Shown here piece after piece: positions 16,024 to 48,816 of a DNA stretch of 64,000 bases. The notes beneath the pieces are model-generated. The model ran no database searches. It saw nothing but the letters and a program-made list of their open reading frames with translations, and was not told where the DNA came from. Position numbers and translations under genes: made by a program. Within the stretch, counting starts at the first letter, position 1. Each line of letters begins with the position of its first letter. The DNA lies in the IMG/VR virus record IMGVR_UViG_3300020473_000010, positions 224,698-288,697 of that record, one strand, 5' to 3'.

Positions 16024-16069
16024 TTTTTGTATACCTCTCTAAATAAAGATACTCCTAAGTTTAAAGAAG

Positions 16070-17092: not shown

Positions 17093-17136
17093 ATTTTATT
17101 TGTAGTGAAAGGTTTGTTGAAGTTTTGCCAATTCTA

Positions 17137-17165
17137 ATTTTATCTAGTCTATACCATTTGTACAA
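17137..17165 (-). promoter_or_regulatory. Sigma70-like promoter TTGTAC-N17-TAAAAT upstream of gmd
   Basis: Exact 17-nt spacing, intergenic; member of a family with about 10 copies in the window. Confidence 0.6.
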
Positions 17166-17167
17166 GA

Positions 17168-20012: not shown

Positions 20013-20014
20013 TT

Positions 20015-21989: not shown

Positions 21990-21992
21990 AAT

Positions 21993-29130: not shown

Positions 29131-29150
29131 ATTGTATCTCCTATTACAAG

Positions 29151-29162
29151 AATAAAATAACC
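29151..29162 (+). repeat. Left copy of a 12-bp inverted repeat AATAAAATAACC
   Basis: Exact reverse complement of 34046-34057; the two copies bracket the + strand cassette. Confidence 0.6.
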
Positions 29163-29175
29163 TCTATGAGCAGCA

Positions 29176-29217
29176 GTGTAAAATATTTACCTAAATTATA
29201 GTATGGAATATATTTAT
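29176..29217 (+). promoter_or_regulatory. Tandem promoter elements for the + strand cassette: GTGTAA-N17-TAGTAT and ATATTTAT
   Basis: Both recurring motif classes occur in the divergent intergenic region. Confidence 0.55.
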
Positions 29218-29243
29218 TTATAAACCATCTCTGGAATTTGAAT

Positions 29244-30885: not shown

Positions 30886-31781
30886 GATTTTATATGTATG
30901 ATTTTGGGGATTTAAACGTATACATAAAATGGGATTATGATCGATTTTTCTATAAACGTTGGTGTGAAGAGAGTTTTAATGCCCTGCATAGACACCCGTA
31001 CAGGGTTGATGATCCAGAGGAAGCTGATTTTTTCATCGTTACACAGACGTTACGTTCTGTTCCGTTTGCTGGATTTAGCTGGAGAGCTTATTTAGATGGT
31101 TTCTTAAGAGGTCAAAAGTTCTGGAATCAAGGGAAACCTCATGTTTTTTTTGATATTAAAGATTCACCTAGACCGATCATAGAGGATCCTAGAGCCATTG
31201 TTTGCAAAACGGCTTTTCATGAAGATTTTTTTAACCCAAAACTACACATACCAATTCCACAATTTCCCAGAGAAAGGTTTGAAGAAGAGATTATACCGGT
31301 TGGCGAAAGAAAGCATTTAGTTGGTTTTAAGGGTCATCCTAGAACAGAATGGACCGATCTAAGATCTAGATTATTTAAACTCAACGATGGGAAAGATATT
31401 ATAATTGTACCCGGGATATATTCCAAAGATACAATAGAAGAGCATAATAATATCTTACGTAATTCAAAATTTGCTTTGTTGCCTCGAGCTAACGGATATG
31501 CTTTATCATATAGAATGATTGAATGCATGAACCTTGGGTGTATACCAGTAATAATTTCCGATGGACATGTTCTTCCATTTCAATCAGAAATTGATTATAA
31601 TTCTTTTTCTGTTCGAATTAAAGAAAATAAAATTAACAATTTAGAAGAAATGCTTAGAAATCGAGAAGATCTTGAAATTTTACAAAGGAAATCTTACGGA
31701 GCTTATTTAAAATATTTTTCTTCTACAGAAACGATTATTAATCATTCGCTAAATTTGATAGAGAAGATGGAATGGGCTTAG
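30882..31781 (+). CDS. Exostosin-family (GT47) glycosyltransferase
   Basis: DPEEADFF, SKFALLPR.....SYRMIECMNLGCIPVIISD..VLPF..EIDY..FSVRI. Confidence 0.88.
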   Translation: MRFYMYDFGDLNVYIKWDYDRFFYKRWCEESFNALHRHPYRVDDPEEADFFIVTQTLRSVPFAGFSWRAYLDGFLRGQKFWNQGKPHVFFDIKDSPRPIIEDPRAIVCKTAFHEDFFNPKLHIPIPQFPRERFEEEIIPVGERKHLVGFKGHPRTEWTDLRSRLFKLNDGKDIIIVPGIYSKDTIEEHNNILRNSKFALLPRANGYALSYRMIECMNLGCIPVIISDGHVLPFQSEIDYNSFSVRIKENKINNLEEMLRNREDLEILQRKSYGAYLKYFSSTETIINHSLNLIEKMEWA

Positions 31782-32467
31782 AAACAATATATGGCATTAT
31801 GATAACCGGGAAGACCCCGGAGCGTATTCTAATGGCAAATCTTTCAGCCCAAAGCTTTTTTAAACAAACATATAGCAATAAGCATTTGCTAATAATTGAT
31901 GATGGTGATTTTGATTTCAATTTCTCTAACAGTGTTGCAACACATCTAAAAGTTTCCAATGGGCTAACACTTGGAGAACTACGAAATATAGCATTGGACT
32001 ATCTTCCAGTTAATTCTGTCTGGGTTCAATGGGACGATGATGATTGGCATCATCCTAACGTAATCTCGGAGCAATATGAAGAACTTTCTAGGGCAAATGT
32101 TCCTTGTTGTTTTATGAAAAGCCAAATCCGTTATTCATTTAACAAAAATTGTGCCTGGATTTTTGGAGAAAATTTAAATTCTGAATACCGGGGCATTTGT
32201 GGTACCGGAATGTTTCGAAATAGCGAAATTCGATATCCGGCACTTGAAAAGTCTGAAGACAGTGTTTTTTCTAGGTATTATGAAAATAATGATATATTGT
32301 GGGATAATCCTCCGCATTATTATCTAAGATTTATTCACAACAATAATACATGGGATGAGGATCATTTTCTGTGTAGTAGAATGGAAAAAAACACCTGGGA
32401 TATTAATGGATATTCCCGGGAATATTTAGAAAAAATACTAGATTTATACAAGAGTTCAAAGTGTTAA
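31772..32467 (+). CDS. Glycosyltransferase family 2
   Basis: FFKQTY, LLIIDDG, LGELRN, QWDDDDW, SED. Confidence 0.85.
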   Translation: MGLETIYGIMITGKTPERILMANLSAQSFFKQTYSNKHLLIIDDGDFDFNFSNSVATHLKVSNGLTLGELRNIALDYLPVNSVWVQWDDDDWHHPNVISEQYEELSRANVPCCFMKSQIRYSFNKNCAWIFGENLNSEYRGICGTGMFRNSEIRYPALEKSEDSVFSRYYENNDILWDNPPHYYLRFIHNNNTWDEDHFLCSRMEKNTWDINGYSREYLEKILDLYKSSKC

Positions 32468-33252
32468 ATATAGTCATTACAGGATATAACTCTGTCAAAT
32501 GGCTTCAAAAATGCCTTGAGTCAGTATCAAACCAAAAATATAAAGATTTTTCTTGCATTGTTATTAATGATGCTTCAACTGACTTGGGTTTTGAAGAAGT
32601 TGCATTATCTTATTGTAATTTGCATGGCTGGAGATATATAAAGAATACTAAAAGATCTGGCCCTTTATTTTCAAGAATAAAAGGGATAGAATTTTTAAAC
32701 CTTGATGATAATGATATCATCTTTTTAATAGATGGAGATGATTGGCTATTGCATGAAAATGTTTTCCAGTATATACTTGATATATACAACGTTAACGACA
32801 TATATCTTACGTGGGGATATTGGAAACCGATTGATACCTCTGGGAGACAGGCGAACCGAGAAAGAACTCTTGATGATGTTTATATCCCTAGAATGAAATA
32901 CATTGATGAAAACAGGGATCAACTTTTTATAGAAAATTCCTATCGAGGAGCTCCTTTTTCATTTGCTCATCCCAGAACGTTTAAGTATATTTTATGGAAA
33001 AATATTGATCGATCTGATTTTTTTGACCAAAATGGAACAATGTTCTTGTCCGCTACTGATTATGCCTTCATGTATCCAATGCTGGAAATGTGTGGTGATA
33101 AATTTAAAATAATCTATGAAAGATTAATTGCATATAATTTGCATGACGAAAATATAGTCATGATATCAAAAGAAGATAGAAAGCAAAACAGAATATGGTG
33201 TAATGAGATCAAAAGAAAAAGAAAATATTTGCCAATTATTTTAGATAGCTAA
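32461..33252 (+). CDS. Glycosyltransferase family 2
   Basis: GYN, INDASTD, IDGDDWL, HPRTFK..LW, D.AFMYPMLEM; paralog of the N-terminal domain of 24183-25559. Confidence 0.88.
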   Translation: MLNIVITGYNSVKWLQKCLESVSNQKYKDFSCIVINDASTDLGFEEVALSYCNLHGWRYIKNTKRSGPLFSRIKGIEFLNLDDNDIIFLIDGDDWLLHENVFQYILDIYNVNDIYLTWGYWKPIDTSGRQANRERTLDDVYIPRMKYIDENRDQLFIENSYRGAPFSFAHPRTFKYILWKNIDRSDFFDQNGTMFLSATDYAFMYPMLEMCGDKFKIIYERLIAYNLHDENIVMISKEDRKQNRIWCNEIKRKRKYLPIILDS

Positions 33253-33268
33253 TTAGGAGAGAACAGTA

Positions 33269-33997
33269 ATGGGGAAAGAAAATAAAAAAATTTTTATAAT
33301 AGGTTTTAATAAATGTGGAACAAGAACGTTATCTAAATATTTTGAAAGCCAAGGTTTAGGCACTTATCATATAGGAAGAGATTGGTATCCGTTTAGTTGT
33401 CAACTAACAGATAATATGGCAAATAGAAAAAAAATATTAGATTCATATGAACATGATGTTTATGCAGATCATGCTTTTTTAGTAAGATACTATAAAAGAC
33501 TGGACAAAGATTATCCTGGAAGTTTATTTATTCTTAACACTAGAGATGTTGATGATTGGCTTATCAGCAGATTAAATCACCATTGGTGCACAATGGTTCC
33601 CGCATATAATGTACGTACTGGTCACAGAAACCTGAATTGGAAACAGTGGGTTGCTGATTGGCGAGTACAGTGGGCAGAGCACCATAAAGATGTTAAAAAG
33701 TTTTTTTCGAATAGGCCGAGTGACTTATTAATTTTTAATATCAATAATGATGACGTACAAAAGATTATTGATTTCTGTTTACCGGATTATAATTTTAATG
33801 AATCGGGGTGGGGCCACTCCGGAGAAACGCTGAAGCGACAGGAGCTTTATTTTTCAAAAATAAATGGGGAAATAGTTAATATCAAGAAACCACCTGAGCG
33901 AGCTCGTCCGTTTGATCCATGGCATATTGAGCTAAAGATGGTAACAACCAGTATTTCTACTAAACATATGATAACTGATCCAAAAGAAGAATTATAA
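33269..33997 (+). CDS. Sulfotransferase family protein
   Basis: IFIIGFNKCGTRTL, YPGSLFILNTRDVDDWLISR, V..FF..RP.DLL. Confidence 0.8.
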   Translation: MGKENKKIFIIGFNKCGTRTLSKYFESQGLGTYHIGRDWYPFSCQLTDNMANRKKILDSYEHDVYADHAFLVRYYKRLDKDYPGSLFILNTRDVDDWLISRLNHHWCTMVPAYNVRTGHRNLNWKQWVADWRVQWAEHHKDVKKFFSNRPSDLLIFNINNDDVQKIIDFCLPDYNFNESGWGHSGETLKRQELYFSKINGEIVNIKKPPERARPFDPWHIELKMVTTSISTKHMITDPKEEL

Positions 33998-34045: not shown

Positions 34046-34057
34046 GGTTATTTTATT
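34046..34057 (-). repeat. Right copy of the 12-bp inverted repeat (GGTTATTTTATT)
   Basis: Exact reverse complement of 29151-29162; overlaps the tail-fibre stop codon. Confidence 0.6.
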
Positions 34058-37000
34058 AAGATAATTTAGTTAACCTAATCCAATTTTCCAATGCTTCACT
34101 ATCAGTATTCCCAATTTCGGTTTTTATAACTTGGTTACTAGCAGTTCCAACTGCCTGTACAGTAAAAATAACCCTTAATTTATCGTTATTGGTTAACGAA
34201 ATTAATCTAGGTTGTTTCATAAGGCTCCAAGTAGCAAATACGTTATCACCTTGTAGTGTAATTTCATTCCCTGTTGCTATAGTTGACCAGGATCCGGTAC
34301 CGCCTGGTTGTTGCTGGAGATCAGCGCGGTATTTCTTTTTCTTATCGCCGCCGCCGTTTTGAGTTTTTGCATAAATCTGAAAAGAAACTTCGTAGGTTCC
34401 AGCTCCACTAGCCGGAAGAGTTATAGTGCCGTTAGTTAAATTCGTACCTCCAGTGGTAACAGTTAAACTATTATTATCTAATAATTCAGAGTCCCAGTTT
34501 ACGATTGTTGCAGTTTGCTGTCCATCAGGGCCGTTGTTATCAACGAGCTGTGTTTGGACGAATAACGATGGGTCCGCGGATTTGTCGATATGTATAATCG
34601 ATTGTGATCCACCAGAAGCGCCAGCTGCGCCCATTTTTGCTTTGGTAATAGTATATTTTTTAGTTATTGTAACACCACTGACAATTGCCCTGACCGTGAA
34701 GGTTTCTGAATCAGTAGTCCAAGAGCCTCCAGTTAAAGCATATACGCCAGTCGATTGAGTAATCGTAAATGTTAGGCCATTTTGAACAGCAGCAACGTTG
34801 GTTCCGGAAGTTCCGGTATAATAAGTGGAGTTTGCGCCGGTCTTATCAACTGCCCCAAGATATCTATGAAAAGTTCCTCCGGCTGAAGTTAGGTTATAAC
34901 CTGTTCCATCATTTGCGGCTGCCACTGTTGGACTTGAATTTGACAACCAACCATAATGTGCATCAGTTCCATTGGTTCCATTTGATCCATTTGATCCGTT
35001 TGACCCATTAGCGCCGTCTGCTCCCGGGATTGTCTTATCTAGAATAATTTTTACGATATGATCTGTAACCGCAGCGCCATTGACGAAAGCGTCGACTTTT
35101 ATTGATAATTCGATATATTTAAGAGGTTTACCTGATGTAAGCTCAGTTGCAAAAGCAACTAGTTTCAGTTTTGCTTCGCCACCCACTAATTCCGGTTCTA
35201 GTTGAGCTAGAATAACACCACTACTATTAGTGTGTTTGAATTTTATTTTATTAGAATTCCAATATGAATAGATAGGAGCGCTAGTCCCATCTGTGGCATA
35301 TGCTGTGCCGGCGACATCTTCGGCTACTGTTACTTTAAGCGCAAATTTGTCCGCAGTTGTTCCTTCTGTTCCGTTATTTGAACTGTTGTATTCAATTGCT
35401 GTATTAGCCCGTTTTCCTGTAATCGCGATGTGGTCTACGGCAGACTGAATTGTAACAGCCCCGGCACTGTCGACGACAGCAGGAGATAAAACACCTCTTT
35501 TGGTAGCGTGAATTACCCATGCATCTTTTCCATCTGCTCCTGGTGACCCAGCTGAACCACCTGCTCCATCTGCTCCACGTTTACCAGATTTTACTATCAC
35601 TAATGGAACTTTATAATCATCAACTGCTTGACTGTTTACGTAAGCATCAACAGGGATTTTTACATGAATAGAATGAAGGTCAACAGCTCCTCCAGCGGTT
35701 CGCTGCGTAACAACATCTTTTACAAGAAGTTTCGCATTGGGAGACACATTTGATGGGTATACTTTTGCGAGTATTTGTCCGGACACGTCTGTATCTCTTA
35801 ATTCTAGATAGGACGCATCGGAGGGAGCACCATCGAACCATTTTGAATATACGTTTCTTGAAACCCCAGTCGTAGAATAACTCGTTCCTATAACTTTCCC
35901 ATTGGTTTCGATATCGAGGGCAAAGCGATCATTTGTAGTACCTTCAGCACCATCTGTTTTATTAAGGTATTGAATTGCTGTTCCTTGTCTATCGCCATAG
36001 ACCTCTACAAAATCTGCGTTGCTATTGGTAACAGCCCAATTAGCAGCAACGTTAGCTAAGGCGACAACACCGTTGTTTGTTGTGTTGATAATAAACCCGT
36101 CTTTACCGTTGGTGCCAGTATCACCTTTTTTACCTTTTCTAACTATTATTCCAACGTTTTGTGTAACTGTATTACTAGAGTCTATTCGGATATGTACTGG
36201 AATTTTCATTACTAATTTAGTATATGGATCGGCATTACTAGCATTCCATCCGGATTGCATTGCAGATACTGTAAGTTGTGCGTTGTTGCCTAAATCGGCT
36301 TCAGTCATTTGCAAGACAATATGGGCAGAATTTTTAAATTGAATATTAGCAGCGTAAGAATCAGAACTGGCCATAGATAATGCGCCAGTCGTATTATCAG
36401 CATCTTTGATCACATATGCGGTGATGTTGGCATAGTCTACATTAAATTGATTAGCTGTACCTGGGGCGGCAGTTCCGTTACCCTGATAGGCTGCTGTTGT
36501 TCCACCGACACGAACGGATATCTCTGCTTTATGACCCGCGCTAACTGCTATAGTTGCAGAATCGTCTGCTGGGTTTTTACCGGCGGCATTGGTACCGACG
36601 ACAATTTCACCTGGTTCGACAGTTGCTATAGCTGCGGAAATAGCGTTGTTGGCGTCAAACTTAATAGCTTTTAATGTGTTATCCGATGAAATAGTAATAT
36701 TATTTCCAGCAACAAAATCGACAGTGCCATCGGTATTAACTACATCATCTGATGGGCTATGGGTCCATGTATATCCAGAATCAGCATTATTACTATCGAT
36801 TATATTAAAATCTGCGCCGGCATCTAATCTAATATCTGTTCCATCTTCTCTGGTAAAATACAGGTGAGTTTCATTTGGATCATCAATCTTTTTAACCCAA
36901 ATTTGCCCATATTCTACTAGGTCTGTATTCGAAGCGGTTTGTTCTTTTAGATAAATACTTTGTTCACCGTGCAGGTTTCCTTCCATGTCGAGTTCGATTG

Positions 37001-39185
37001 CTGGATCACCATCTGGGGTTGTAATTCTTCCGGAAAGTTTTAAGTCTCCACCAAGCACTCTTTTTAAACTGACGTCATCAATAGTGAATGTATTCCCAGC
37101 AGAAGAAGATACAATTTGGATTACAAATCCGGACGAATGGATTCCATCGTCGGCGGCGCTTCCACCAGCGGAGGATCCCTTGGATCTAAAATATACAGTA
37201 TGTGTTCCATTTGATATAGGAAGTGGAGTATTAGTATGAGCAAAGCTAGCATTGGTTATTCTAGCAGTAGGAGAACCACTTACTCCTGAAATCGTATATT
37301 TAAATTTATAAAGCTTTGCTGGAAGTGCTTTTGCTCCGGAGGATACCATGTTGGCTTTGTTTTGGCTTAAGTTCCCTGGGGAAGCGTGGTGTGCATAAGT
37401 CCAGGCGCCGGAGCCATGGGTCCAACCATTTTGAGCACCACCAGTATTCCAATTGTTTGCATTTGGAAACCCGGTATTTTGAAGTATTTCGTTTGAATCT
37501 ACATTTGAACCCTCGAGATTTTCTAATACTAAATTAGAGAATCTTTTACTGGCCCATTTACCATATGTAGTCCCGGTTTTTAAAGATGGAGATGCTGATG
37601 GTGTTGATGCTGCTGAGATCTTCCACCCTTTGGATACATAGCTTCCAGGATCCGTAGAGGTAGTTCCTCCCAAGATAGTAACATAACAATAAGAATGGGA
37701 TTCGACATCTCTAATCCATAATTCTGGTATTCTGTTTGATCCTACAGTGATTACTATATCTGTGTTTGGGGCCCAAGGAGTGGAAGAGGTTGAATCTTTA
37801 ATATCGGTTGCATTAATCATCTCAACCGTTACTTGCGTTCCGTCTGTATCAATATATGGAGATCCTGTTTGTGCCGTATATTTTGCAGAAACGATGAATG
37901 AGCGATCAGCAGCATGGTCTGCATGGTTTTCGTTTCCGACAAAGTTAACTAAAAACTGATTAATGATTGTATCACCATTACCAACAGCGGCTCGACCTTC
38001 TGCTATTTTTAACCAATACCTGTCTGTTGTTACCGGTGTTCCAGTTACTATTGAAGATGCTGCGCCAGTCCCCCAACTTAATACTCCATTACCGTCGGTT
38101 TCAAGCCTGTCTCCAGCGGACCCGTCATCAGTTGGCAAGGTCCAAATAGTACTAGGGTTTGTGGCTACGGTTGGAGCTTGAAACCCTACGTAGTGGGAAT
38201 TATCAACATCATAAAACCTTAGTTGGCCTGTGACAGGGGCTGAAGGATCAGTATTATTATTTTTTATTCCTACGTTTCCGTCATCAACTGTTAATTTATC
38301 AGAAGGTGAAGTTGTTCCAATACCAACTTTTCCATCATGTTGAATTCGTACCTTTTCAGAATTATCTACCTGGAAAGTAATAGTAGAATTATTTGCTACA
38401 CCACCATCATCTGCATAAAATTCTAGATTCCCATCTGATGATTGAACACCTGAATAAGCGTTAGTATCAGAGTCTGTTAATCTAATTTCTGGAACTGGGG
38501 CCTTTAAATGAATAGGAGTGTCCGGAGAATCAATCCCAATACCAACTCTTTTATCGTTTTTTACAACAAAAGCTGGGGAACCTCCAACATTGATATCTAA
38601 AGCATGATAAGTTGTTCCAGATCCATTTTGATTGATTGTTACTGCAGTAGCAGTTCCGTCATTTGTAACTGTCCAACTTTCTGTTGTGCTGGCGTCTGTA
38701 TGAATCTGTGTATAATCACCCGTAACTTTTAAATCACCTTCAATTCTTGTATTTCCTACAATGTCTAATTTATATCCTGAAGTAACAGAGGTTGTTCCAA
38801 TACCAACTTTGTCAGCCGTTGTTGTTAATCTTACAGTTGAACCGTCATCTGTCCATCCTGAATTATAGCTTCCTGCAGGCCCTCCTAAAGAACCTGAAAT
38901 ATAAACATCACCTACAAATAAAGTTGTACCTTCTGTTCCTCCAATTCCTTGAGAGGGAGTTGATCCAGAGACTAATAGCCAAACATCTGAACCAACACAA
39001 TTGGCAGAAGAAGCATCTTTAAGCATGTTAGAATCATAAGCACCATCGGCGTTAGACGCTTTTGAAGCTGAATAAACCAGCATCGATGGTACGTATCCAG
39101 CCGTGTGTGTTGCAACGCCGGCTTTAGTACCAGAGGCAATTAGTTGTGTTGTTCTTATCTGTTTTGAACGAAAATCGCTAGACAT
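34056..39185 (-). CDS. Long tail fibre / receptor-binding protein (1709 aa)
   Basis: Repeated KVGIGT motifs, WTLP..DG..G..L.TDGNG.LSW, collagen-like G-X-Y hinges between repeated beta modules, C1q-like C-terminus (GTITLP..GAGTYEVSFQI). Confidence 0.8.
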   Translation of the reverse strand: MSSDFRSKQIRTTQLIASGTKAGVATHTAGYVPSMLVYSASKASNADGAYDSNMLKDASSANCVGSDVWLLVSGSTPSQGIGGTEGTTLFVGDVYISGSLGGPAGSYNSGWTDDGSTVRLTTTADKVGIGTTSVTSGYKLDIVGNTRIEGDLKVTGDYTQIHTDASTTESWTVTNDGTATAVTINQNGSGTTYHALDINVGGSPAFVVKNDKRVGIGIDSPDTPIHLKAPVPEIRLTDSDTNAYSGVQSSDGNLEFYADDGGVANNSTITFQVDNSEKVRIQHDGKVGIGTTSPSDKLTVDDGNVGIKNNNTDPSAPVTGQLRFYDVDNSHYVGFQAPTVATNPSTIWTLPTDDGSAGDRLETDGNGVLSWGTGAASSIVTGTPVTTDRYWLKIAEGRAAVGNGDTIINQFLVNFVGNENHADHAADRSFIVSAKYTAQTGSPYIDTDGTQVTVEMINATDIKDSTSSTPWAPNTDIVITVGSNRIPELWIRDVESHSYCYVTILGGTTSTDPGSYVSKGWKISAASTPSASPSLKTGTTYGKWASKRFSNLVLENLEGSNVDSNEILQNTGFPNANNWNTGGAQNGWTHGSGAWTYAHHASPGNLSQNKANMVSSGAKALPAKLYKFKYTISGVSGSPTARITNASFAHTNTPLPISNGTHTVYFRSKGSSAGGSAADDGIHSSGFVIQIVSSSAGNTFTIDDVSLKRVLGGDLKLSGRITTPDGDPAIELDMEGNLHGEQSIYLKEQTASNTDLVEYGQIWVKKIDDPNETHLYFTREDGTDIRLDAGADFNIIDSNNADSGYTWTHSPSDDVVNTDGTVDFVAGNNITISSDNTLKAIKFDANNAISAAIATVEPGEIVVGTNAAGKNPADDSATIAVSAGHKAEISVRVGGTTAAYQGNGTAAPGTANQFNVDYANITAYVIKDADNTTGALSMASSDSYAANIQFKNSAHIVLQMTEADLGNNAQLTVSAMQSGWNASNADPYTKLVMKIPVHIRIDSSNTVTQNVGIIVRKGKKGDTGTNGKDGFIINTTNNGVVALANVAANWAVTNSNADFVEVYGDRQGTAIQYLNKTDGAEGTTNDRFALDIETNGKVIGTSYSTTGVSRNVYSKWFDGAPSDASYLELRDTDVSGQILAKVYPSNVSPNAKLLVKDVVTQRTAGGAVDLHSIHVKIPVDAYVNSQAVDDYKVPLVIVKSGKRGADGAGGSAGSPGADGKDAWVIHATKRGVLSPAVVDSAGAVTIQSAVDHIAITGKRANTAIEYNSSNNGTEGTTADKFALKVTVAEDVAGTAYATDGTSAPIYSYWNSNKIKFKHTNSSGVILAQLEPELVGGEAKLKLVAFATELTSGKPLKYIELSIKVDAFVNGAAVTDHIVKIILDKTIPGADGANGSNGSNGSNGTNGTDAHYGWLSNSSPTVAAANDGTGYNLTSAGGTFHRYLGAVDKTGANSTYYTGTSGTNVAAVQNGLTFTITQSTGVYALTGGSWTTDSETFTVRAIVSGVTITKKYTITKAKMGAAGASGGSQSIIHIDKSADPSLFVQTQLVDNNGPDGQQTATIVNWDSELLDNNSLTVTTGGTNLTNGTITLPASGAGTYEVSFQIYAKTQNGGGDKKKKYRADLQQQPGGTGSWSTIATGNEITLQGDNVFATWSLMKQPRLISLTNNDKLRVIFTVQAVGTASNQVIKTEIGNTDSEALENWIRLTKLS
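34966..35016 (-). repeat. Degenerate 9-bp tandem repeat encoding GAN-GSN-GSN-GSN-GTN-GT (collagen-like)
   Basis: ttccattggttccatttgatccatttgatccgtttgacccatt. Confidence 0.7.
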
Positions 39186-39822: not shown

Positions 39823-41145
39823 CTATAAAATTGTTGAAGCTACCGAAGCTAAATCACTTCTTTGGCCCCTGCTTAAATTTACATGTGCAGACAAAGGAGA
39901 TTGTCTGAATTTATCTATAACTATGCTTAAACCTGAACTCTGTCTATCAATATATGGAGTATCAATTTGATCAATATCACCCAACAGAACGATTTTACTG
40001 CCCTGACCGATTCTTGTAATTATAGTTTTCAACTGATGAATGGTAGCATTTTGAGCTTCATCTACTATTACAAACGAATTGTTGAAGGTTCTTCCGCGGA
40101 TATATGGAATTGGAGCAATTTCAACATCACCTTTTTCTATCATGAGCTTAAAATAAGAAATATCTTTAAAAGCATGCCTGACATTGTCGAAAATCGGCAT
40201 GAGCCAGGGTGCCATTTTATCTTCCATTGATCCCGGAAGATATCCTAAATCTCTTCCAACCGGTTGCAGAGTTCTTGTAATAACCAGTCTTTCGAATCCA
40301 AAAGATAATTCTTCCGGAAGTTTACTGGATATACCTCCAGATTTTTCTTTCATTCCGGATAAACCTGCCATCAGCGCCAAAAACGTTTTTCCGCTTCCTG
40401 CTATTCCTGTCAGGGTAACTAGCGGAATTGATGGATCCAAAAGTGCCTCTAGTGCAAATGATTGCTCAGCATTCCTTGGTTCAACGGAAATCAGCCCTTC
40501 TAATTTTCTATTAAGCTTATGAGCAAATCCTTTTTTATGGATCCCTAAGAAGGATTTTTGATCGTTTTTACCAATTACAAACTGATTTTCATCTGTAATA
40601 TTTTCTATTTTTAAAAAACCATCATCATAAAATTGGTCAACCTCTGCAGGGTTTAATAGAATTTCACTCCACCCGCTTAAGGTCGATACATCTGAATCGA
40701 TATGGTCTTTGAAGTAATCTTGCGCTTTTACTCCAACAGCATCACATTTTACTCTTAAGTTTATATCTTTCGTAATTACGATAACTGTTTTTTCTTCATC
40801 TTCCATTTGGATGTATTTTGCACATGCAATAATATGGTTATCAGTAGAATTTGAATCTAGCCCTTCTGGCATATATGGCTTTAAAGGCTTTGTAACGAAT
40901 TTAAACCTTATATCATCCTCTGATATTCTCCACCCCGCTTCATCTTTGGGAGCTTCTCTCATTATATCTAGAAATCTATTAATATATCGAGCTGCTTCAC
41001 CAAGTAATCCTTGTTTTTCTTTGAATTTATCTAATTCTTCTAAAATGCACAGTGGAAGAACAATATCGTTACCAACGAATTGATGGATTGCTTCTTTATC
41101 GTAAAGCATTACGGAAGTGTCAACTACAAATATTTTTCTACTCAT
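39823..41145 (-). CDS. phoH: PIN-domain PhoH-family ATPase (YlaK/PhoH2-like)
   Basis: VVDTSV, LEELDKFK, TKDINLR; GIAGSGKT, GYLPG, YIRGRTF, DEAQN, TRIG.GSK...GD..QID. Confidence 0.93.
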   Translation of the reverse strand: MSRKIFVVDTSVMLYDKEAIHQFVGNDIVLPLCILEELDKFKEKQGLLGEAARYINRFLDIMREAPKDEAGWRISEDDIRFKFVTKPLKPYMPEGLDSNSTDNHIIACAKYIQMEDEEKTVIVITKDINLRVKCDAVGVKAQDYFKDHIDSDVSTLSGWSEILLNPAEVDQFYDDGFLKIENITDENQFVIGKNDQKSFLGIHKKGFAHKLNRKLEGLISVEPRNAEQSFALEALLDPSIPLVTLTGIAGSGKTFLALMAGLSGMKEKSGGISSKLPEELSFGFERLVITRTLQPVGRDLGYLPGSMEDKMAPWLMPIFDNVRHAFKDISYFKLMIEKGDVEIAPIPYIRGRTFNNSFVIVDEAQNATIHQLKTIITRIGQGSKIVLLGDIDQIDTPYIDRQSSGLSIVIDKFRQSPLSAHVNLSRGQRSDLASVASTIL

Positions 41146-41158
41146 TCATATTTCCTTT

Positions 41159-41196
41159 ATGTAAAATCTGTTTATATGTGATAAAATTACCACATA
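41159..41196 (+). promoter_or_regulatory. Promoter ATGTAA-N17-TAAAAT overlapped by inverted repeat TATGTG-N10-CACATA
   Basis: Divergent intergenic region; AGGAGG SD follows. Confidence 0.55.
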
Positions 41197-41207
41197 GGAG
41201 GTTCAAC

Positions 41208-41447
41208 GTGAACAAAAAAAACGAAACATGTTTTTCAAAACATAAAAATCTTAATAAATCCTGCCAAGACAAAAGTTGTCGACAATGGATGAATTGTGAA
41301 AATAAATTAAATTGTGCAATAATTGCTGCAAAAGATGGCCCGAGGACTTTGCAAGAAATTGGTGATTTACATGGATTGACTAGAATGCGCATATGCCAAA
41401 TTGAAAAAATTGCTCTAAAAAAAATAAAACTTTTGTATCAAGAATAA
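41208..41447 (+). CDS. Small Cys-rich protein with a sigma70 region-4 HTH (79 aa)
   Basis: AGGAGG then GTG at 41208; RTLQEIGDLHGLTRMRICQIEKIALKKIK. Confidence 0.8.
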   Translation: MNKKNETCFSKHKNLNKSCQDKSCRQWMNCENKLNCAIIAAKDGPRTLQEIGDLHGLTRMRICQIEKIALKKIKLLYQE

Positions 41448-41468
41448 ATATCACCAAAAACAAAAATA

Positions 41469-41484
41469 GGAGCCAAGTGGCTCC
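41469..41484. terminator. Hairpin GGAGCC-AAGT-GGCTCC between convergent genes
   Basis: 6-bp GC stem with a U-rich tail on the - strand. Confidence 0.6.
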
Positions 41485-41514
41485 CATAAATTAAGGTTTA
41501 TTAATTTAATTTGC

Positions 41515-41718
41515 CTAATTTTTTGATGCTTTTCGGTGTTTGTCTAGCTCAACTGTTAATTTAACTAATTCAGCCGATTGGGCCTTCAATAGTCTAAGAC
41601 CTTTGCGGGCGCGAATACCTGCGCTAGCATTTCCGGCAGCGTTTTTATGTACGTCTAAATCAATGCTCTCAATTAGAGTCTTGATTTCTGTCCATTTTTC
41701 TGTTACTGGATTACTCAT
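41515..41718 (-). CDS. Histone H1-like nucleoid protein (Hc1 family)
   Basis: D..K...GNASAGIRARKGLRLLK matches the Hc1 GN.AAG.RARK motif. Confidence 0.75.
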   Translation of the reverse strand: MSNPVTEKWTEIKTLIESIDLDVHKNAAGNASAGIRARKGLRLLKAQSAELVKLTVELDKHRKASKN

Positions 41719-41720
41719 CG

Positions 41721-41957
41721 TTATTCTCCTGTTATTATTGAATTTTGTGGCTTATCAGCCTTGTTGAAAGTTTTAATTAAATTTGTTATTTCTTTCATTT
41801 GGATATTGTTTTCTAATTCTAAAGCTAGCAAAAATATCATTTGTAAAATTTGTTGCTGATTAATTCCGTATTCTAGTACTACCTGAACTATTTCACGGGC
41901 TTTTGCGTTGTCTTCAACTGAAATTTCTTCGTTTGATTTACCAAATATTTTTTTCAT
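41721..41957 (-). CDS. Hypothetical protein
   Basis: 78-aa ORF with coupled start/stop. Confidence 0.6.
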   Translation of the reverse strand: MKKIFGKSNEEISVEDNAKAREIVQVVLEYGINQQQILQMIFLLALELENNIQMKEITNLIKTFNKADKPQNSIITGE

Positions 41958-42415
41958 TAAACTACTCTCTGAATAATATAGGGTTCTATGGCATATTTTC
42001 CACGACCTTTAAAACGTAATAATTTACCTACAGTCTCATCTTTTTCATCTTCACGGTGTAATATAATATGCGAATCCCATTCTTCGTTTTGTAATATGTC
42101 TAAAACATGTTCATAATCTGGTAATTCACAATTATAACTTTCTAAAATAGAGACTAAATTATCTGGTATGAGCATTTTTAAATCAGTTGCTTCTAATACA
42201 GCTCCGACTTCTTTGCCTAATTGAATTTCGGATTTACAAACATCTATAACTTGATGAATTACACCACAGTTATTACATTTAGCGAACTTTGGAATTATTC
42301 CTCCCGAAGTATCAAAAGTAGAATATACTATAAACTTATGATATTTTGGATTCTGTGTTTTTCTAAATTGAGGTAAAACACAGTGACATTCAACTAAATG
42401 CTTGATTCCAGACAC
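41957..42415 (-). CDS. Hypothetical protein with a putative Zn-binding motif
   Basis: ECHC...H...CNNC...H...C. Confidence 0.6.
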   Translation of the reverse strand: MSGIKHLVECHCVLPQFRKTQNPKYHKFIVYSTFDTSGGIIPKFAKCNNCGVIHQVIDVCKSEIQLGKEVGAVLEATDLKMLIPDNLVSILESYNCELPDYEHVLDILQNEEWDSHIILHREDEKDETVGKLLRFKGRGKYAIEPYIIQRVV

Positions 42416-42654
42416 TATTTTGTCTTACCTCTTCCTCTTGGGGTAGAAGTTTTTACTCTGCTAATAATTGTTTGCTGAAGCACTTCATAACCATTGGCGC
42501 CATGAGTAGCAAAGGCTGATTCAATTACGGCAACTACTTTTGTTTTATCGTGCTGATCAGCGCCTAGTTCGGTTAATACTTCTAAAACATCTCTAATTGC
42601 TGTGTCTTTAATAATAGATGTTATATCTTGATATGTTGATAGTATTTTTTCCAT
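42415..42654 (-). CDS. Hypothetical protein
   Basis: GGAGG SD and CATATTTAT motif upstream. Confidence 0.6.
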   Translation of the reverse strand: MEKILSTYQDITSIIKDTAIRDVLEVLTELGADQHDKTKVVAVIESAFATHGANGYEVLQQTIISRVKTSTPRGRGKTK

Positions 42655-42720: not shown

Positions 42721-43920
42721 CTATTCAGGACATAATAAAAATCCGCCTATGGACTCGATTTTGTCCTTGAATGCTTTTGAGTGCTTTAAGGCTGTATTAA
42801 AATGGGAATAGGGGATTTTTCCAATGTTTGTATTTAAAATACCAGATCTTGTATATTCTTGAAATGTCTTAAGTGCGTTATCTAGGTTTTCGAAAATGAT
42901 AGGGTTTTCATTTTTTAAATTTATTTCTATGACCTCAGAGGATAATGAAGAAATTCTTTGTGATAATATTTCTTGTTCATTATGGTCTGTTGAAGATTCT
43001 AATCTAGAACACAACGATCTTAAATGATAATTATCTGTAATATTCGAAGTAATAATTGTTTCCCAATCATCAACAGAAAGATGGGGAGAGAAACCGTGTT
43101 TTTCTGAATCAACAACCGAAAGAGATAGTACATCTCCTAAATTCGAAGAGATAGGGAGAGCACTTGTTATTGAAGCTATATCAATAGAGGTATTAATATT
43201 TTCTACGCTGTTTCCATAAACTACCGGTAATACAGATAAAGATCCTTTAATCCAATTTGCAGCTAAGGTTGAAGAAACCTCTTCGGGGAATGATCTTGCA
43301 ATTAGTAATACATTCCATTTTAGTTCATGTGATTTCGTTAGTAACCTATCAAGTTCCCCTATTGACTGAGGAGCTCCTTCAATTATAATAATTTTGGCAT
43401 CATTTAAATAAAGCGATTTAGATCCAACCGACTTAAAGAAAACAGGATCTAGACCTATAGGAAATTTATTAGCGTTGATTACTTTAATGGTATTACGATT
43501 ATAATTTCCAATTTTTAAATTTATTCTTGCAGTTGAACTTAAAATAGATTTTAATGCTTGAAATATTTTAAGTTCTTCCCCATGCAAAAATTGCGATGAT
43601 AAATTTAATGATGCTTCAGATGTTGCTTTTGAATATGAGATCTTTTTTACATCGTTGTATAAAAATTTTACTAATAATGGCGAAGAACCTGGTGCTTCTT
43701 TTTCCATAGATTGTAGATGATCTAATAATATATTTCTTAATGCTAATTTAGAGCCGGAGCATTGTTGTTCAAAAACCCATCTCATAGTAGAAGGAGGGCG
43801 AATTTTATATATTTTATCTTCGTAATGAATCATTTTATGATGATCCCATATACCGTAACATGAAATCAATAGATTTTTTAACCATGCAGAATTTTGTGCT
43901 GGCTCATAAACTCTTTTCAT
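42721..43920 (-). CDS. Highly diverged GroEL/chaperonin-like protein lacking the GDGTTT ATP motif
   Basis: Apical-domain-like NDAKIIIIEG..QSIGELDRLL......NVLLIARSFPEEVSSTLAAN.IKG.L.V; DIASIT...ISSNLG; LESSTDHNEQEILSQRISSL (cf. GroEL [20 protein letters not shown]). Confidence 0.65.
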   Translation of the reverse strand: MKRVYEPAQNSAWLKNLLISCYGIWDHHKMIHYEDKIYKIRPPSTMRWVFEQQCSGSKLALRNILLDHLQSMEKEAPGSSPLLVKFLYNDVKKISYSKATSEASLNLSSQFLHGEELKIFQALKSILSSTARINLKIGNYNRNTIKVINANKFPIGLDPVFFKSVGSKSLYLNDAKIIIIEGAPQSIGELDRLLTKSHELKWNVLLIARSFPEEVSSTLAANWIKGSLSVLPVVYGNSVENINTSIDIASITSALPISSNLGDVLSLSVVDSEKHGFSPHLSVDDWETIITSNITDNYHLRSLCSRLESSTDHNEQEILSQRISSLSSEVIEINLKNENPIIFENLDNALKTFQEYTRSGILNTNIGKIPYSHFNTALKHSKAFKDKIESIGGFLLCPE

Positions 43921-44165
43921 TAATGAAACCCGTTTGGTTTTGCTCCTAAAGTTGCTAAAAAAGCAGTAAATTTATCAGCTGATTGTTCTATAATTTCGCT
44001 TGTCTTCTTTATTTTTTCCTGCTCTTCAGCTCGATCTAGTGCAACAGCACAGAGTCGTGAAATTACACCTATAGAAAAAGCAATTACACTGAACCAAAAA
44101 GATTGACTATACATAAAAAGGCTAAATATTATTAAGATTTCTGGCATGCCTATGTTTATTTTCAC
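43920..44165 (-). CDS. Small membrane protein
   Basis: Hydrophobic N-terminal segments; coupled to prkA. Confidence 0.55.
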   Translation of the reverse strand: MKINIGMPEILIIFSLFMYSQSFWFSVIAFSIGVISRLCAVALDRAEEQEKIKKTSEIIEQSADKFTAFLATLGAKPNGFH

Positions 44166-46087
44166 GAATCCCTCCAGAGATTATTTGATGCATATGTTAA
44201 AATTTCTTCTGCAGAATCTTCATTATATCCATATTCGTCGACTAGAGTCTGGACCATATCACTATATTTTTTTCTTTGGTCATCATCTCGAGATTTGCTT
44301 TTGGTGACGATTCTTGCCATATCTTTTACCGAATTGATTAAATAAGCTTCAATGGCTTCTTTTAAAGGTTCGTAACTTCTATAATCTACTGTTTCTCCAT
44401 GTCGCATTTTTGCAAACATATATGCAGTAACATCGGATCTAAATCCTTGGCGGGCGGATCCTGAAATTCCTATTACTTCTTCAATTGATTTCATAAATTT
44501 TTCATCGGCGTCGTATTCATCGCCAGTAATTGGATCTTTGATTTTGGATTTAGTTGTATATGCTTCAGCATTATCCAAATACGTATCAAATAAAGATTGA
44601 GCTTGCTCTTCATAGGCTGTAATAAACGCTTTTGCAATTTCGGTTTCTAAGATTCTAAGATATTCTTCTCTAACGGTTTTTTGAATAATTTCTAAACACT
44701 TTTCTCGGAAATCTTCATCTACGATTTGTTCTTTTACCATTTTTGTAAGAGATTTCATAACCCCTATAGGTGTAACACACGCTTTACTCTCATCAGTTAG
44801 TGCATGATCAATTGATTTCATGATAAATCTAGTAGATATTCCTTTCATACCTTCATTTCGTGATTCTTCTTTTAGGTCTTTAATATCAATCTTTTTGACT
44901 CTGCCTTTTTCAATAACTTCTTCTCCGTTGTAAATCTTCATTTTAGTTAAAAGATCACACTTGTTTGAGTGTTTTAATCTACTCATTACAGAAAACATTG
45001 AAGCAACTTTAATAGTATGGGGAGCAATATGCGCATTGAAATCAGATCTACTTAGGATTTTTTCGTAAATTTTAATTTCTTGATCAAGTTCTAAAATGTA
45101 AGGAACATTAATTTTTACAACTCGGTCTAATATAGCTTCGTTAGTATGCTCTGATTTAAATCTATTCCATTCTGATTCGTTACAGTGGGCAAGAATTACT
45201 CCGTCAAAAAAGACCATATCATGTTTTCCAGGGGCAGGTACCCTTTTTTCTTGAGTTGCTGTAATGATTGTATGCAAAAATTCAATTTCGTTTTTGAAGA
45301 CTTCGATTAATTCAACCAATCCTCGATTACCGACGTTGAAAGCACCGGTTAGATTTAATACCCGCGGGTCGTCTTCGGAATATTTATCAAGTTTCGAAAT
45401 ATCTTCTGAACCAATTAAAACTGAAACATCTTGACTATTTGCATCCATGGGTGGGACAGAAGCAATACCTCTACGTCCTCTCTGTGAAAACGAAGCCTGT
45501 ACCACAGGGAAGTTTTCATATTCACCGCTATGCTCATTTAAGAGTTTCCAGCGCGCAATGGGGCTTAAATCACCTTCAATTTTTACACCAAGTAGTTTTT
45601 CGAAATCTTCTCTTAGTGACCTTGGAAGGAGCTGTAAAGGCTCACCACGCTGAGGGTCTCCATCTAAGTGAAAATATTTTTCACCATCTAATGCTTTTTT
45701 AATGTGTTCTGTTAAAGCTGATTTCCCTGCTCCAACTGGGCCCATTAACAGTAGAACTTGTCTAGACTCTTCACCACGTAAAGCTGCTCCTTTAAGAAAC
45801 CTCATTAATTTCTCAATGACATGTTCCATTCCAAAAAATTCTTTGGAAAAATAATCATAAACTCTAATGTTTTCACCATTAAAGATTTTTCTTTTTCTGG
45901 GGTTTTCATCTGACATTATAGAAATACCTTTGGATTCAATGGCATCATATAATCGTTTATGAGCTAGCTTTGCAATCGATGGATTAGATTGAACTAGCTC
46001 TAAATAATCAAGAAAAGTTCCCTCAAATTTCTTTTCCTTTCTCTTGTTTCGTTGTTTTTTAATCAGGTCCAAAAATTTGTTTGACAT
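44162..46087 (-). CDS. prkA: PrkA/YeaG-family AAA+ serine protein kinase
   Basis: FFGME, LLLMGPVGAGKS, D...LIG.EDISKL..YSEDDPR, GNRGLVE.IE.FK, AH.NE.EW..FK...NEA.LDR, EGMKGISTRF. Confidence 0.93.
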   Translation of the reverse strand: MSNKFLDLIKKQRNKRKEKKFEGTFLDYLELVQSNPSIAKLAHKRLYDAIESKGISIMSDENPRKRKIFNGENIRVYDYFSKEFFGMEHVIEKLMRFLKGAALRGEESRQVLLLMGPVGAGKSALTEHIKKALDGEKYFHLDGDPQRGEPLQLLPRSLREDFEKLLGVKIEGDLSPIARWKLLNEHSGEYENFPVVQASFSQRGRRGIASVPPMDANSQDVSVLIGSEDISKLDKYSEDDPRVLNLTGAFNVGNRGLVELIEVFKNEIEFLHTIITATQEKRVPAPGKHDMVFFDGVILAHCNESEWNRFKSEHTNEAILDRVVKINVPYILELDQEIKIYEKILSRSDFNAHIAPHTIKVASMFSVMSRLKHSNKCDLLTKMKIYNGEEVIEKGRVKKIDIKDLKEESRNEGMKGISTRFIMKSIDHALTDESKACVTPIGVMKSLTKMVKEQIVDEDFREKCLEIIQKTVREEYLRILETEIAKAFITAYEEQAQSLFDTYLDNAEAYTTKSKIKDPITGDEYDADEKFMKSIEEVIGISGSARQGFRSDVTAYMFAKMRHGETVDYRSYEPLKEAIEAYLINSVKDMARIVTKSKSRDDDQRKKYSDMVQTLVDEYGYNEDSAEEILTYASNNLWRDS

Positions 46088-46100
46088 AATTCGATTGCTC

Positions 46101-47393
46101 CTAAATTTCATATGGTGCATTATCCACCATCGTTATTAACTTTACTTCGCTTCCCCACAAATGTTTACAATGTTGTACAACTTGGTTGGCGTGTTCTATT
46201 TGAATATCTCTTCCGTCATGTTCATGATGCAAAATTAAGATATGGCCTAAATCAATACTTTCTACGTAAATTGACGGAATAGAATTTCCGCCGATTTGTT
46301 TTAGAAGTCTAGTTTTCACTGATTCCCATCCCTCTTCATCGCTGACATCATCTATTATGTAATTATCGTCCGCAGGGGAAAACGAAAATAAATTTAATTC
46401 TTCACAGTCTTCTCGAGTAAGATATTGTCTAATAAAAGATTCATCATTGTGGACTTCACGGGCTAAAAAGCATTCTTCTAAACCATATCTCTCTTCGATT
46501 TTATTAAATAGATGAAAACCTAAATGATAAGGATTTATTCTCCCAATATGTGGGCGAACTACTTGGTTGTGAGATTTCAAAAAAGGTATATGAAATTCTT
46601 GTGGAAGATTTAATTCATGAAGAATTTTATAATGCCACATACATGCCCAGCCTTCATTCATTGTTTTTGTTCTTATTTGGGGCATAAAATAATATGCAGA
46701 ATCTCTTACAATTGAAATAATATCTTTTTGCCAATCTTCTTGGTTTTCCCCATGGGCTTCAATGAAGCCAAGAAGATCATGTTCGGGATAAGGTGGGATC
46801 AATGTTGGGTCGAAATCTTTTTGATCTAATCTTGCATCTGAATATTTTTTATATTCCTCAGCTAAATCTTGGTAATCAACAGGATGACGAGGGACTTGGT
46901 AAGAAACAGCATGACAAGCATCAATATAATTTTCAACTTTTTCAATACCAATTGCTGGATTTTCAATATATTTCTGGATACGTTTTTTAGCATTACGCAT
47001 TCTAGGAACAACCGTGTCAGCTCTAGTATACATAAAATGGCGGTTTTTCTTAAAAAAATCAGAATGGCCTACACAGTGGGCCATAATAAGAATTTGTAAA
47101 TATAGAGGGTTTTCGCGCATCAAATATGATATACAAGGATCTGAATTAATAATTAATTCATAAGGCAAACCTGTGGCGCCGGCATTGTATTGGCTTCGTT
47201 GAATTTCAAACGATTTGCCATAGGACCAATGTCCATAATGGGTTGGCATGCCGTGATATGACATATTCCCAATCATTTCGTAATAATCGCATGTTTCATA
47301 CGTTATTGGATACCAATCAAGGTTATGCTTCTGTGCAATCTCACAGATTTTTTCATCCCACTCTTGCAGATCTAATAAATCCCAATTACTCAT
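46101..47393 (-). CDS. spoVR: SpoVR/YcgB family protein
   Basis: GMPTHYGHWSYGK, YELIINSDPCISYLM, AHCVGHSDFFK.N, PQIRTKTMNEGWA..WH, NPYHLG. Confidence 0.93.
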   Translation of the reverse strand: MSNWDLLDLQEWDEKICEIAQKHNLDWYPITYETCDYYEMIGNMSYHGMPTHYGHWSYGKSFEIQRSQYNAGATGLPYELIINSDPCISYLMRENPLYLQILIMAHCVGHSDFFKKNRHFMYTRADTVVPRMRNAKKRIQKYIENPAIGIEKVENYIDACHAVSYQVPRHPVDYQDLAEEYKKYSDARLDQKDFDPTLIPPYPEHDLLGFIEAHGENQEDWQKDIISIVRDSAYYFMPQIRTKTMNEGWACMWHYKILHELNLPQEFHIPFLKSHNQVVRPHIGRINPYHLGFHLFNKIEERYGLEECFLAREVHNDESFIRQYLTREDCEELNLFSFSPADDNYIIDDVSDEEGWESVKTRLLKQIGGNSIPSIYVESIDLGHILILHHEHDGRDIQIEHANQVVQHCKHLWGSEVKLITMVDNAPYEI

Positions 47394-47647
47394 AATTTTG
47401 ATACCTCGTATAGGTTTAATATTGGATGATCGGATATTTCTCCAGATGACCATAAAACAGAAACTACATCTGTAAAATCTTCATGATAATCTTGAATCCA
47501 TTTTCCATTTCTTTGTTTGATAGTTTCAACTAACCAAAACGCATTGTATGGTGTAGATGATATTATTATTCCAAAGTCGGTTTTAGTATCTTGGATTTTT
47601 TTATTCCTATAACTCCATCCAGTTCCTACTACGGTTCCTTTTTTCAT
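47390..47647 (-). CDS. Small SH3-like hypothetical protein
   Basis: KKGTVV...FGIII...VSVLWSSGEI; coupled at both ends. Confidence 0.55.
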   Translation of the reverse strand: MKKGTVVGTGWSYRNKKIQDTKTDFGIIISSTPYNAFWLVETIKQRNGKWIQDYHEDFTDVVSVLWSSGEISDHPILNLYEVSKL

Positions 47648-48816
47648 CTTTCACCGCCAAAAAATTTCTTAAAAGCTGGCCAAACATCATTTTTTTCTCT
47701 TATAAAAACTACTTTAAATTTTTCATCTTCTAAAGGTTCATATAATTTTCCTAAAGCTGTTTCATTCATCCACCTAAGACTTTCTTCTTTTGGCTCTATC
47801 TCGCAATATCCGTATAATTGACAGCGTTGTTTAAGTTTTTCAGTATATTGCTTTGTTTTATCATTATCGCTGGGCCAATTATCTCCATCTGAACAATGAA
47901 ATCCGTAGATATTCCAGGAAGCAGAATCGTATCTTTTGTCGATTGCATCACAGACATATTCCAAAGCAGGGGAAACTAAAGTTCCACCACCTGATCCACG
48001 GTGGAAAAATTTATCTTCATCTACTTCGTATGCTTGGGTATCATGGGCTATGAAAACGATTTCTGTTTTCTCATATCTGCTTCTAATAAAATGATACAAC
48101 AAGAAGAAAAAAGACCGAGCTAAATATTTTTTAGTAGTACTCATCGATCCTGAGACATCCATTATGAAAAATATTACTGCATTCGATGCATGTTTTTCGT
48201 CTTTTTTAATATGTTTATATCTCAAATCGGATTCACGGAAAGAAAAATTTTCATCTGATTCTGGATCATAAGTTCCTGAGCGGATTGCTGCTTTTTTTCG
48301 TCGTATACGTCGTTTTGCTGTCTCTTTTTTACTTAATCTAGGGCGGATCCCTTCGTTTCTGTAACCTTTCCTTTTCCACTTCTCAGAAAAGATATATTTT
48401 GCTTGTTTCTTTTCTAGATCGGGAAGATTTAAATCGCGAAATAAATAATCTGCTAATTCTTCTAAAGTAACTTCAACATCATAGTATTCTTGGCCCGGTT
48501 CGTTTCCAGGTTTTCCGGTACCAGGCTTTTGGCTAGTTTGGGGGTTTTGACCAATTTTTTGACCCCGTTTAACATCATGCTCTCCGGCGGCTCCAACTCC
48601 TCCTGAAGAATTTTTTCCATATACAAATTTGTATTCTTTTATTCCTCGCACAGGAATACGGATTTTCTTCTTTCCATCTTGGCCAATAATCGATTCTTCT
48701 GCTACAATATCATGAATTCCTTCGCGGATTGCTTTTTCGATTTTTTGCTTATGGCGACGTCGGTCTGATGCTGAACGATCTGCTGTTGTTTTGTGATGTG
48801 AAAAAACGCTTCCCAT
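47644..48816 (-). CDS. yeaH: YeaH/YhbH (DUF444) vWA-like protein
   Basis: DRRRH, DLNLPDL, DLRY, AVIFFIMDVSGSM, FIAHDT.A.EVDE..FF...GGGT, WNIYGFHCSDGDNW. Confidence 0.92.
   Translation of the reverse strand: MGSVFSHHKTTADRSASDRRRHKQKIEKAIREGIHDIVAEESIIGQDGKKKIRIPVRGIKEYKFVYGKNSSGGVGAAGEHDVKRGQKIGQNPQTSQKPGTGKPGNEPGQEYYDVEVTLEELADYLFRDLNLPDLEKKQAKYIFSEKWKRKGYRNEGIRPRLSKKETAKRRIRRKKAAIRSGTYDPESDENFSFRESDLRYKHIKKDEKHASNAVIFFIMDVSGSMSTTKKYLARSFFFLLYHFIRSRYEKTEIVFIAHDTQAYEVDEDKFFHRGSGGGTLVSPALEYVCDAIDKRYDSASWNIYGFHCSDGDNWPSDNDKTKQYTEKLKQRCQLYGYCEIEPKEESLRWMNETALGKLYEPLEDEKFKVVFIREKNDVWPAFKKFFGGER

Follow-up and report, generated by a model that had tools for sequence, protein, structure and literature searches.

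A short GroEL homologue with a degenerate ATP site in a marine jumbo phage

Gene content of the locus

The window analyzed here (64,000 nucleotides) forms the final 64 kb of a virus record of 288,697 bp, whose completeness is estimated at 96%. On its minus strand, a 399-codon open reading frame (ORF) with an ATG start lies among co-directional genes (Table 1). It is preceded by PrkA and by an 81-aa hydrophobic ORF, probably encoding a membrane protein, whose GTG start overlaps the PrkA stop (GTGA) and whose TAA stop overlaps the ATG of the 399-codon ORF (TAATG); homologues of the 81-aa ORF were found in close relatives only. Three small ORFs and a histone-H1-like (Hc1-like) gene follow, and a terminator-like hairpin with a T run likely marks the end of this gene block. 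The 152-aa product among them is zinc-ribbon-like and has an invariant CxC...CNNCG motif. It is encoded by a core gene that is always nearby, and at 37–60% identity it is more conserved than the 399-aa protein. Its sequence matched nothing in Pfam, PHROG or the PDB, and a Foldseek search with an AF2 model of mediocre confidence (pLDDT 69.7) found nothing at E ≤ 0.001. Beyond the hairpin lie a divergent ORF consisting of sigma-70 region 4 only, whose position is kept in relatives, and a 440-aa PIN-PhoH fusion that adjoins the block in all related loci.

Table 1. Positions of the short GroEL gene, its parts and other features of the window
Feature	Position	Strand	Basis or remark
CDS, 399-aa GroEL-derived protein	42721..43920	-	stop codon 42721-42723
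Reduced N-terminal equatorial segment, aa 1-95	43636..43920	-	model secondary structure and mapping
EAPGSSP, aa 75-81, remnant of GroEL phosphate loop A-G-D87-G-T-T-T	43678..43698	-	alignment
First intermediate-domain segment, aa 96-148 (GroEL ~134-190)	43477..43635	-	alignment
Complete apical domain, aa 149-330 (GroEL 191-376)	42931..43476	-	VIA and invariant columns
Second intermediate segment (helix M), aa 331-358	42847..42930	-	alignment
C-terminal equatorial remnant, aa 359-399	42724..42846	-	alignment and VIA
81-aa hydrophobic ORF (probably membrane)	43920..44165	-	between PrkA and the 399-aa CDS
PrkA	44162-46120	-	upstream
SpoVR	46101-47453	-	upstream
DUF444/YeaH	47644-48816	-	upstream
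79-aa ORF	42415-42654	-	downstream, co-directional
152-aa CxC...CxxC protein	41957-42415	-	downstream, co-directional
78-aa ORF	41721-41957	-	downstream, co-directional
Hc1-like, histone-H1-like 67-aa gene	41515-41718	-	downstream; place kept in relatives
Terminator-like hairpin and T run	41466..41487	-	after Hc1
Sigma-70 region-4-only ORF	41052-41447	+	divergent
PIN-PhoH fusion, 440 aa	39823-41145	-
1709-aa fibre-like ORF	34056-39185	-
Six ORFs	29238-33997	+
Glycosyltransferase run	~12000-29200	-
DUF2201 metallopeptidase/VWA	55723-57141	-
MoxR-like AAA_5 ATPase	57871-58977	-

Close relatives share the gene order DUF444, SpoVR, PrkA, (inserts), small hydrophobic ORF and short GroEL, followed by ORFs of ~75, ~152 and ~78 aa, Hc1, an opposite-strand sigma-70 region-4 ORF and PIN-PhoH. 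Homing-endonuclease and other genes lie between prkA and the short GroEL gene in three related loci (L005–L007), among them GIY-YIG endonuclease genes in L005 (9454-9705) and L007 (8857-9114). Among distant members, PhoH is kept in L009, L010 and L011, and the 152-aa and 78-aa neighbors in the first and last of these; all three are without prkA nearby, so the prkA link is lineage-specific. Across the family, the constant neighbors are the 152-aa protein, the 78-aa protein and PhoH, not prkA. The placement downstream of prkA proposed in an earlier, sequence-only reading thus describes this locus correctly (PrkA, 81-aa ORF, short GroEL), but the association is limited to close relatives. The complete PrkA/SpoVR/DUF444(YeaH) triad (44162-48816, minus strand) is itself an observation in a phage and is syntenic in related marine jumbo phages. 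Its nearest GenBank phage PrkA homologues, in Thermus phages and Ralstonia phage RsoM2USA, share 30–35% identity with it.

The genome is that of a 288.7-kb marine myovirus-like jumbo phage. Besides MoxR-like and VWA genes, it has a homologue of a baseplate-wedge gene and a large cluster of glycosyltransferase genes. A genome search, suggested by the earlier reading for a second, canonical chaperonin, recovered one: a GroEL of 540 aa (G000:C1:95196-96677; L001 1438-3060, minus strand) in which the A-G-D-G-T-T-T loop is intact. It was the sole PF00118 match in the whole genome. A search of all 288.7 kb for PF00166 (Cpn10/GroES) gave no match at E ≤ 1. A sigma-70-like 245-aa ORF lies just downstream of the 540-aa gene on the same strand (L001 416-1153). 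Full-length GroELs of 530–540 aa occur on the same contig in all three large short-form genomes (G000, G004:C5 and G001), the other two being a 305.8-kb contig in a 'Methylococcaceae' MAG and a 273-kb IMG/VR record. The former (NCBI GCA_002170535.1, NHDW01000006.1; 305,838 bp, MAG 'Methylococcaceae bacterium TMED69') is syntenic with the phage and carries both GroEL forms, and therefore looks like a mis-binned phage genome.

GroEL homology and domain architecture

The 399-aa protein matched PHROG 5725 'chaperonin groEL' (E 5.8e-8, query residues 121–335), and in a phmmer search of PDB its best hit was Thermus thermophilus GroEL (E 1.9e-5, query 144–333 against chain 184–377), with dozens more GroEL/Hsp60 chains ranked beneath. 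Comparison of the short family with 21 GroELs by hhalign gave a probability of 96.8% (E 2.3e-10). The Pfam search of the protein returned no match, PF00118 (Cpn60_TCP1) being absent even at E ≤ 1. An AlphaFold2 model built from an alignment of 37 homologues reached a mean pLDDT of 86.8, with no segment below 50, and its best 50 PDB matches in Foldseek were all group I chaperonins (GroEL/Hsp60, best E 6e-21). VIA aligned 391 of the 399 residues to ATP-bound mtHsp60 (Z 24.3, model 1–399 against chain 0–524), gave Z 21.5 against the phage EL chaperonin gp146 (6tmu_A), and superposed model residues 149–328 on isolated GroEL apical domains (191–374) with Z 22.5 and an rmsd of 2.3 Å over 176 aligned residues. 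The whole chain is thus GroEL-like, beyond the central part that the three sequence methods (PHROG, phmmer and hhalign) independently match to GroEL. The model has the three-domain equatorial-intermediate-apical fold with a much reduced equatorial domain. On the sequence and model evidence together, we regard the ORF as a real gene and its product as a true GroEL homologue.

A MAFFT alignment combined the protein with its family (36 close and 122 distant members) and with 21 GroELs; in one of the latter, D87, D398, G414 and D495 bear the same numbers as in E. coli. The alignment pairs residues 4–89 with GroEL 5–98 (minus 27–31), 90–112 with 128–151, 113–365 with 155–415, and 366–396 with 492–522. 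Missing are GroEL 27–31, and with them T30-L31 of the first phosphate loop; 99–127, where helix D ends and most of helix E lies; 416–491; and the C-terminal GGM tail. About two thirds of the equatorial (base) domain is gone, and the protein has ~150 residues fewer than GroEL. VIA pairs Mtb Cpn60.2 62–514 with model 53–391, in agreement with these ranges, and this anchoring identifies model helix 56–75 as helix C and helix 371–390 as the last GroEL helix. The N-terminal segment (aa 1–95) retains strand 1, a short helix A, the stem-loop hairpin, helices B and C and a short helix D, while the C-terminal remnant keeps the last helix and an invariant I-G-G-F-L strand. The most conserved motifs of the family, I-E-G-x-P and A-R-S-F-P-E-E...N-W, lie in the apical domain. 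Both termini had been described as shortened, which is right for the lost C-terminal tail but not for the N-terminal strand or the last helix and strand, all of which are kept (model 1–399 against GroEL 2–525). The terminal strands are in place, and apart from the tail the chain is shortened by internal deletions within the two equatorial segments.

ATP site, apical groove and ring contacts

The sequence-only reading placed EAPGSSP at the position of the GroEL AGDGTTT motif, and this assignment holds in both the MAFFT and the structure-anchored register. E75-A-P-G-S-S-P81 aligns with A-G-D87-G-T-T-T to within one residue, and the structural anchor (model 53 opposite Mtb Cpn60.2 residue 62) has helix C (56–75) end just before this loop. 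A different N-terminal register from hhalign, with G56 opposite D87, was rejected, its per-column confidence being near zero and VIA placing model residue 53 at the start of helix C; it likewise puts no acidic residue at D87. Throughout the family the D87 column holds P or G, with D or E in 0 of 159 members. The D398 position is variable and reads N348 in this protein, one residue after a conserved D347. G414–416 are replaced by T, N or a gap, N479/A480 are deleted, and D495 has become I, L, V or M. At D87 and D398 the register could shift by one residue, but no register restores the motif. Among the best 150 library representatives, D-G-[TS]-[TS] occurred at the GroEL position in none, and three had the string elsewhere. 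In this protein and across the 159 family members, the canonical ATP-site elements (T30–P33, D87, D398, G414–416, N479/A480 and D495) are all lost or replaced, and the degenerate site that had been proposed for this GroEL homologue is borne out by alignment and structure alike. A non-canonical nucleotide or metal site may exist, given the conserved D347 near the D398 position.

The apical groove is remodelled as well. GroEL F204 and L237 are retained, and L234, L259, V263 and V264 are changed to N, S, A and T, respectively, substitutions that are near-invariant in the close family. The groove has become more polar than that of GroEL, and the protein may therefore be a weak holdase of the classical hydrophobic type. 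The near-invariance of the substitutions suggests a specific ligand instead of general hydrophobic capture, so that a dedicated partner is easier to reconcile with the groove than a promiscuous holdase. Neighboring subunits of a GroEL ring are joined by a sheet built from the N- and C-terminal strands and the stem-loop. These three elements are all present in the AlphaFold model, which makes a single ring plausible. The residues of the inter-ring contacts (K105, A109, E434, R452, E461, S463 and V464) all fall inside the deleted 99–127 and 416–491 segments. Single rings may thus still form, with stacking into double rings not expected. A homodimer prediction (two copies, family alignment) scored 0.00 and weighs neither way on assembly.

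Family size, length series and selection

A word-indexed search retrieved 45 relatives, nearly all of 396–417 aa. The 37 close homologues (396–417 aa) have a mean column identity of 63%, with invariant motifs in the apical domain and the C-terminal I-G-G-F-L. An exhaustive profile search returned 1907 clusters at 50% identity with E ≤ 1e-3 (895 at 1e-10 and 127 at 1e-30), and the best 150 of the 1907 were all shorter than 490 aa. We define the short family as proteins of 370–490 aa with full apical and intermediate domains, with GroEL 99–127 and 416–491 partly or wholly missing, and with no D-G-T-T at the GroEL position. The present protein belongs to it and stands at the fully reduced end of the series. 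The apical domain (~182 residues) and both intermediate segments stay constant throughout the wider family, and length (371–488 aa) tracks the residues left of 99–127 and 416–491 (r = 0.91). Both segments are entirely lost in the clade of the present protein.

All 13 short-GroEL ORFs for which DNA was available are intact, and between these genes pS is 0.69–0.82 and pN 0.19–0.47; synonymous sites are saturated in every pair, so that the contrast is usable qualitatively only and not as dN/dS proper. Contigs from further marine metagenome runs were identical over the gene and thus held no variants for pN/pS, and the variants listed within prkA stem from prkA of other organisms. The dN/dS check for decay suggested in the earlier reading accordingly came down to the pS/pN contrast, intact ORFs and conservation, which at the sequence level indicate purifying selection and not decay.

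ESM Atlas neighbors of the protein fall into unnamed clusters with 94–100% viral labels. A tblastn search of 50,697 GenBank phage records with this protein and two distant members found canonical GroELs or nothing, and a scan of IMG/VR for short GroELs gave only five loci. Neither Pfam nor PHROG has a model dedicated to the family, and no source names any member. The literature searched describes full-length viral chaperonins only and no short phage GroEL devoid of the ATP site, and no RNA run containing the locus was found. The short GroELs are a large unnamed family, so far drawn only from uncultured virus and metagenome sequences.

The term paralog is not supported for the short form if it is to mean that the gene arose by duplication of the phage's own GroEL. 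The short-family profile scores bacterial GroELs at 34–51 bits vs 16–25 bits for the co-resident phage GroELs, and a recent copy of the latter was rejected on this ground.

Comparison with known chaperonins

GroEL is the textbook ATP-driven folding machine. The short form shares with bacterial GroEL and mitochondrial Hsp60 the three-domain fold, the domain order, an apical domain that superposes at 2.3 Å, and a recognizable version of the most conserved GroEL sequence block (the helix I region). Unlike them, it is without the ATP residues, segments 27–31, 99–127 and 416–491, the GGM tail and the inter-ring residues, falls below the Pfam Cpn60_TCP1 threshold, and has a more polar groove. The chaperonin fold has also been reused for assembly or binding with a degenerate ATPase in BBS6/MKKS, BBS10, BBS12 and the CCT-like domain of PIKfyve; these are eukaryotic and group II-derived, and they provide a precedent for the short form. 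Engineered GroEL apical 'minichaperones' (PDB 1kid, 1fy9 and 1la1) are likewise ATP-independent pieces of GroEL around the apical domain, and VIA identifies them as the closest structural match of residues ~127–328. The phage protein, by contrast, is natural, has other groove residues, and retains, besides the apical domain, a mini-equatorial core and the two intermediate segments. Among phage-borne relatives, EL gp146, AR9 gp228 and the co-resident 540-aa GroEL share the GroEL fold and a genome without GroES. They have the D-G-T-T-T loop (checked in the co-resident protein), which the short family lacks. The full-length chaperonins EL gp146 and AR9 gp228 are ATPases of ~540–560 aa (PMC7185714, PMC9598537), and known phage GroELs function without a co-chaperonin (PMC7185714, PMC9598537).

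Proposed function and alternatives

The reading we favor, to which we give about even chances, is that the short form is a GroEL-derived pseudo-chaperonin acting as a nucleotide-independent binding or assembly module for one or more dedicated clients. Its apical (substrate-binding) and intermediate (hinge) domains are complete, and its equatorial domain is a small core without any canonical nucleotide-binding residue. Such a protein could bind or assemble other proteins passively, as holdase or adaptor, with no need for nucleotide. One or a few dedicated phage clients would be held by the remodelled, near-invariant groove, and single rings would be possible through the retained intra-ring sheet elements, with no double-ring stacking. 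If so, a large natural family keeps the client-binding half of GroEL under strict conservation while dropping the motor and most of the base, which would show what the GroEL scaffold is capable of without ATP. The graded equatorial reduction (371–488 aa) is a natural test of how small a ring-forming core can be, and the short GroEL is a marker gene for an uncultured marine jumbo phage lineage. A more elaborate version is doubtful: a new class of group I chaperonin derivative, a nucleotide-free, single-ring 'mini-GroEL' serving many ocean jumbo phages as a passive assembly cage or adaptor, and perhaps capping or feeding the phage's own ATP-driven GroEL in place of GroES.

A partnership with the full-length phage GroEL as such, with the short form as hetero-ring subunit, cap or client-delivery adaptor replacing GroES, is unlikely. 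A canonical GroEL does share the contig in 3/3 large short-form genomes, no Cpn10/GroES was found in the present one, and the model keeps the intra-ring contact elements. However, the three genomes represent one lineage, so that their co-occurrence is not independent, and the two genes lie ~130–170 kb apart. The equatorial domains differ by ~110 residues, which would make a mixed ring sterically doubtful, and the co-resident GroEL is no particularly close match to the short family. Known phage GroELs, moreover, need no co-chaperonin (PMC7185714, PMC9598537).

Less likely again is that the short form belongs to a functional module with PrkA, SpoVR and YeaH. It might then, for example, serve the AAA+ protein PrkA as adaptor or substrate-holder, with the 81-aa ORF perhaps providing a membrane tether. 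The apparent translational coupling from PrkA through the 81-aa ORF to the short GroEL, and the same gene order in close relatives, point that way. Against it, inserted genes separate prkA from the short GroEL gene in L005–L007, and L009, L010 and L011 have no nearby prkA while all three keep PhoH and two keep the 152/78-aa neighbors. GenBank phages with PrkA, for their part, are without a short GroEL.

We consider interference with the host chaperonin, by a decoy for host GroES or by poisoning or retargeting of host GroEL, very unlikely. The retained apical domain, which in GroEL binds the GroES mobile loop, and the conserved F204 and L237 would suit such a role, but four hydrophobic groove residues for GroES and substrate binding are now polar or small. 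That the short form is a functionless, decaying GroEL remnant, as the missing ATP site and a chain ~150 residues shorter than GroEL might suggest, is refuted by conservation: intact ORFs of constant length in ~1,900 sequence clusters, saturated synonymous against restrained non-synonymous change, invariant motifs, a confident compact model, and an identical sequence from further marine runs.

Further features of the window and of related contigs

The 1709-aa fibre-like ORF contains several collagen-like G-x-x runs and has a GC content of 0.41 vs ~0.34 around it; it had no Pfam or PHROG match. A long run of minus-strand glycosyltransferase genes is followed by six plus-strand ORFs, where the GC skew turns positive. 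PrkA-YeaH is not the only ATPase-VWA pair, since the MoxR-like AAA_5 ATPase and the DUF2201 metallopeptidase/VWA protein form a second one. Contigs from distant members of the family carry an intein-bearing IMPDH (L010 10-2190) and isocitrate lyase with malate synthase (L011 4145-6921).
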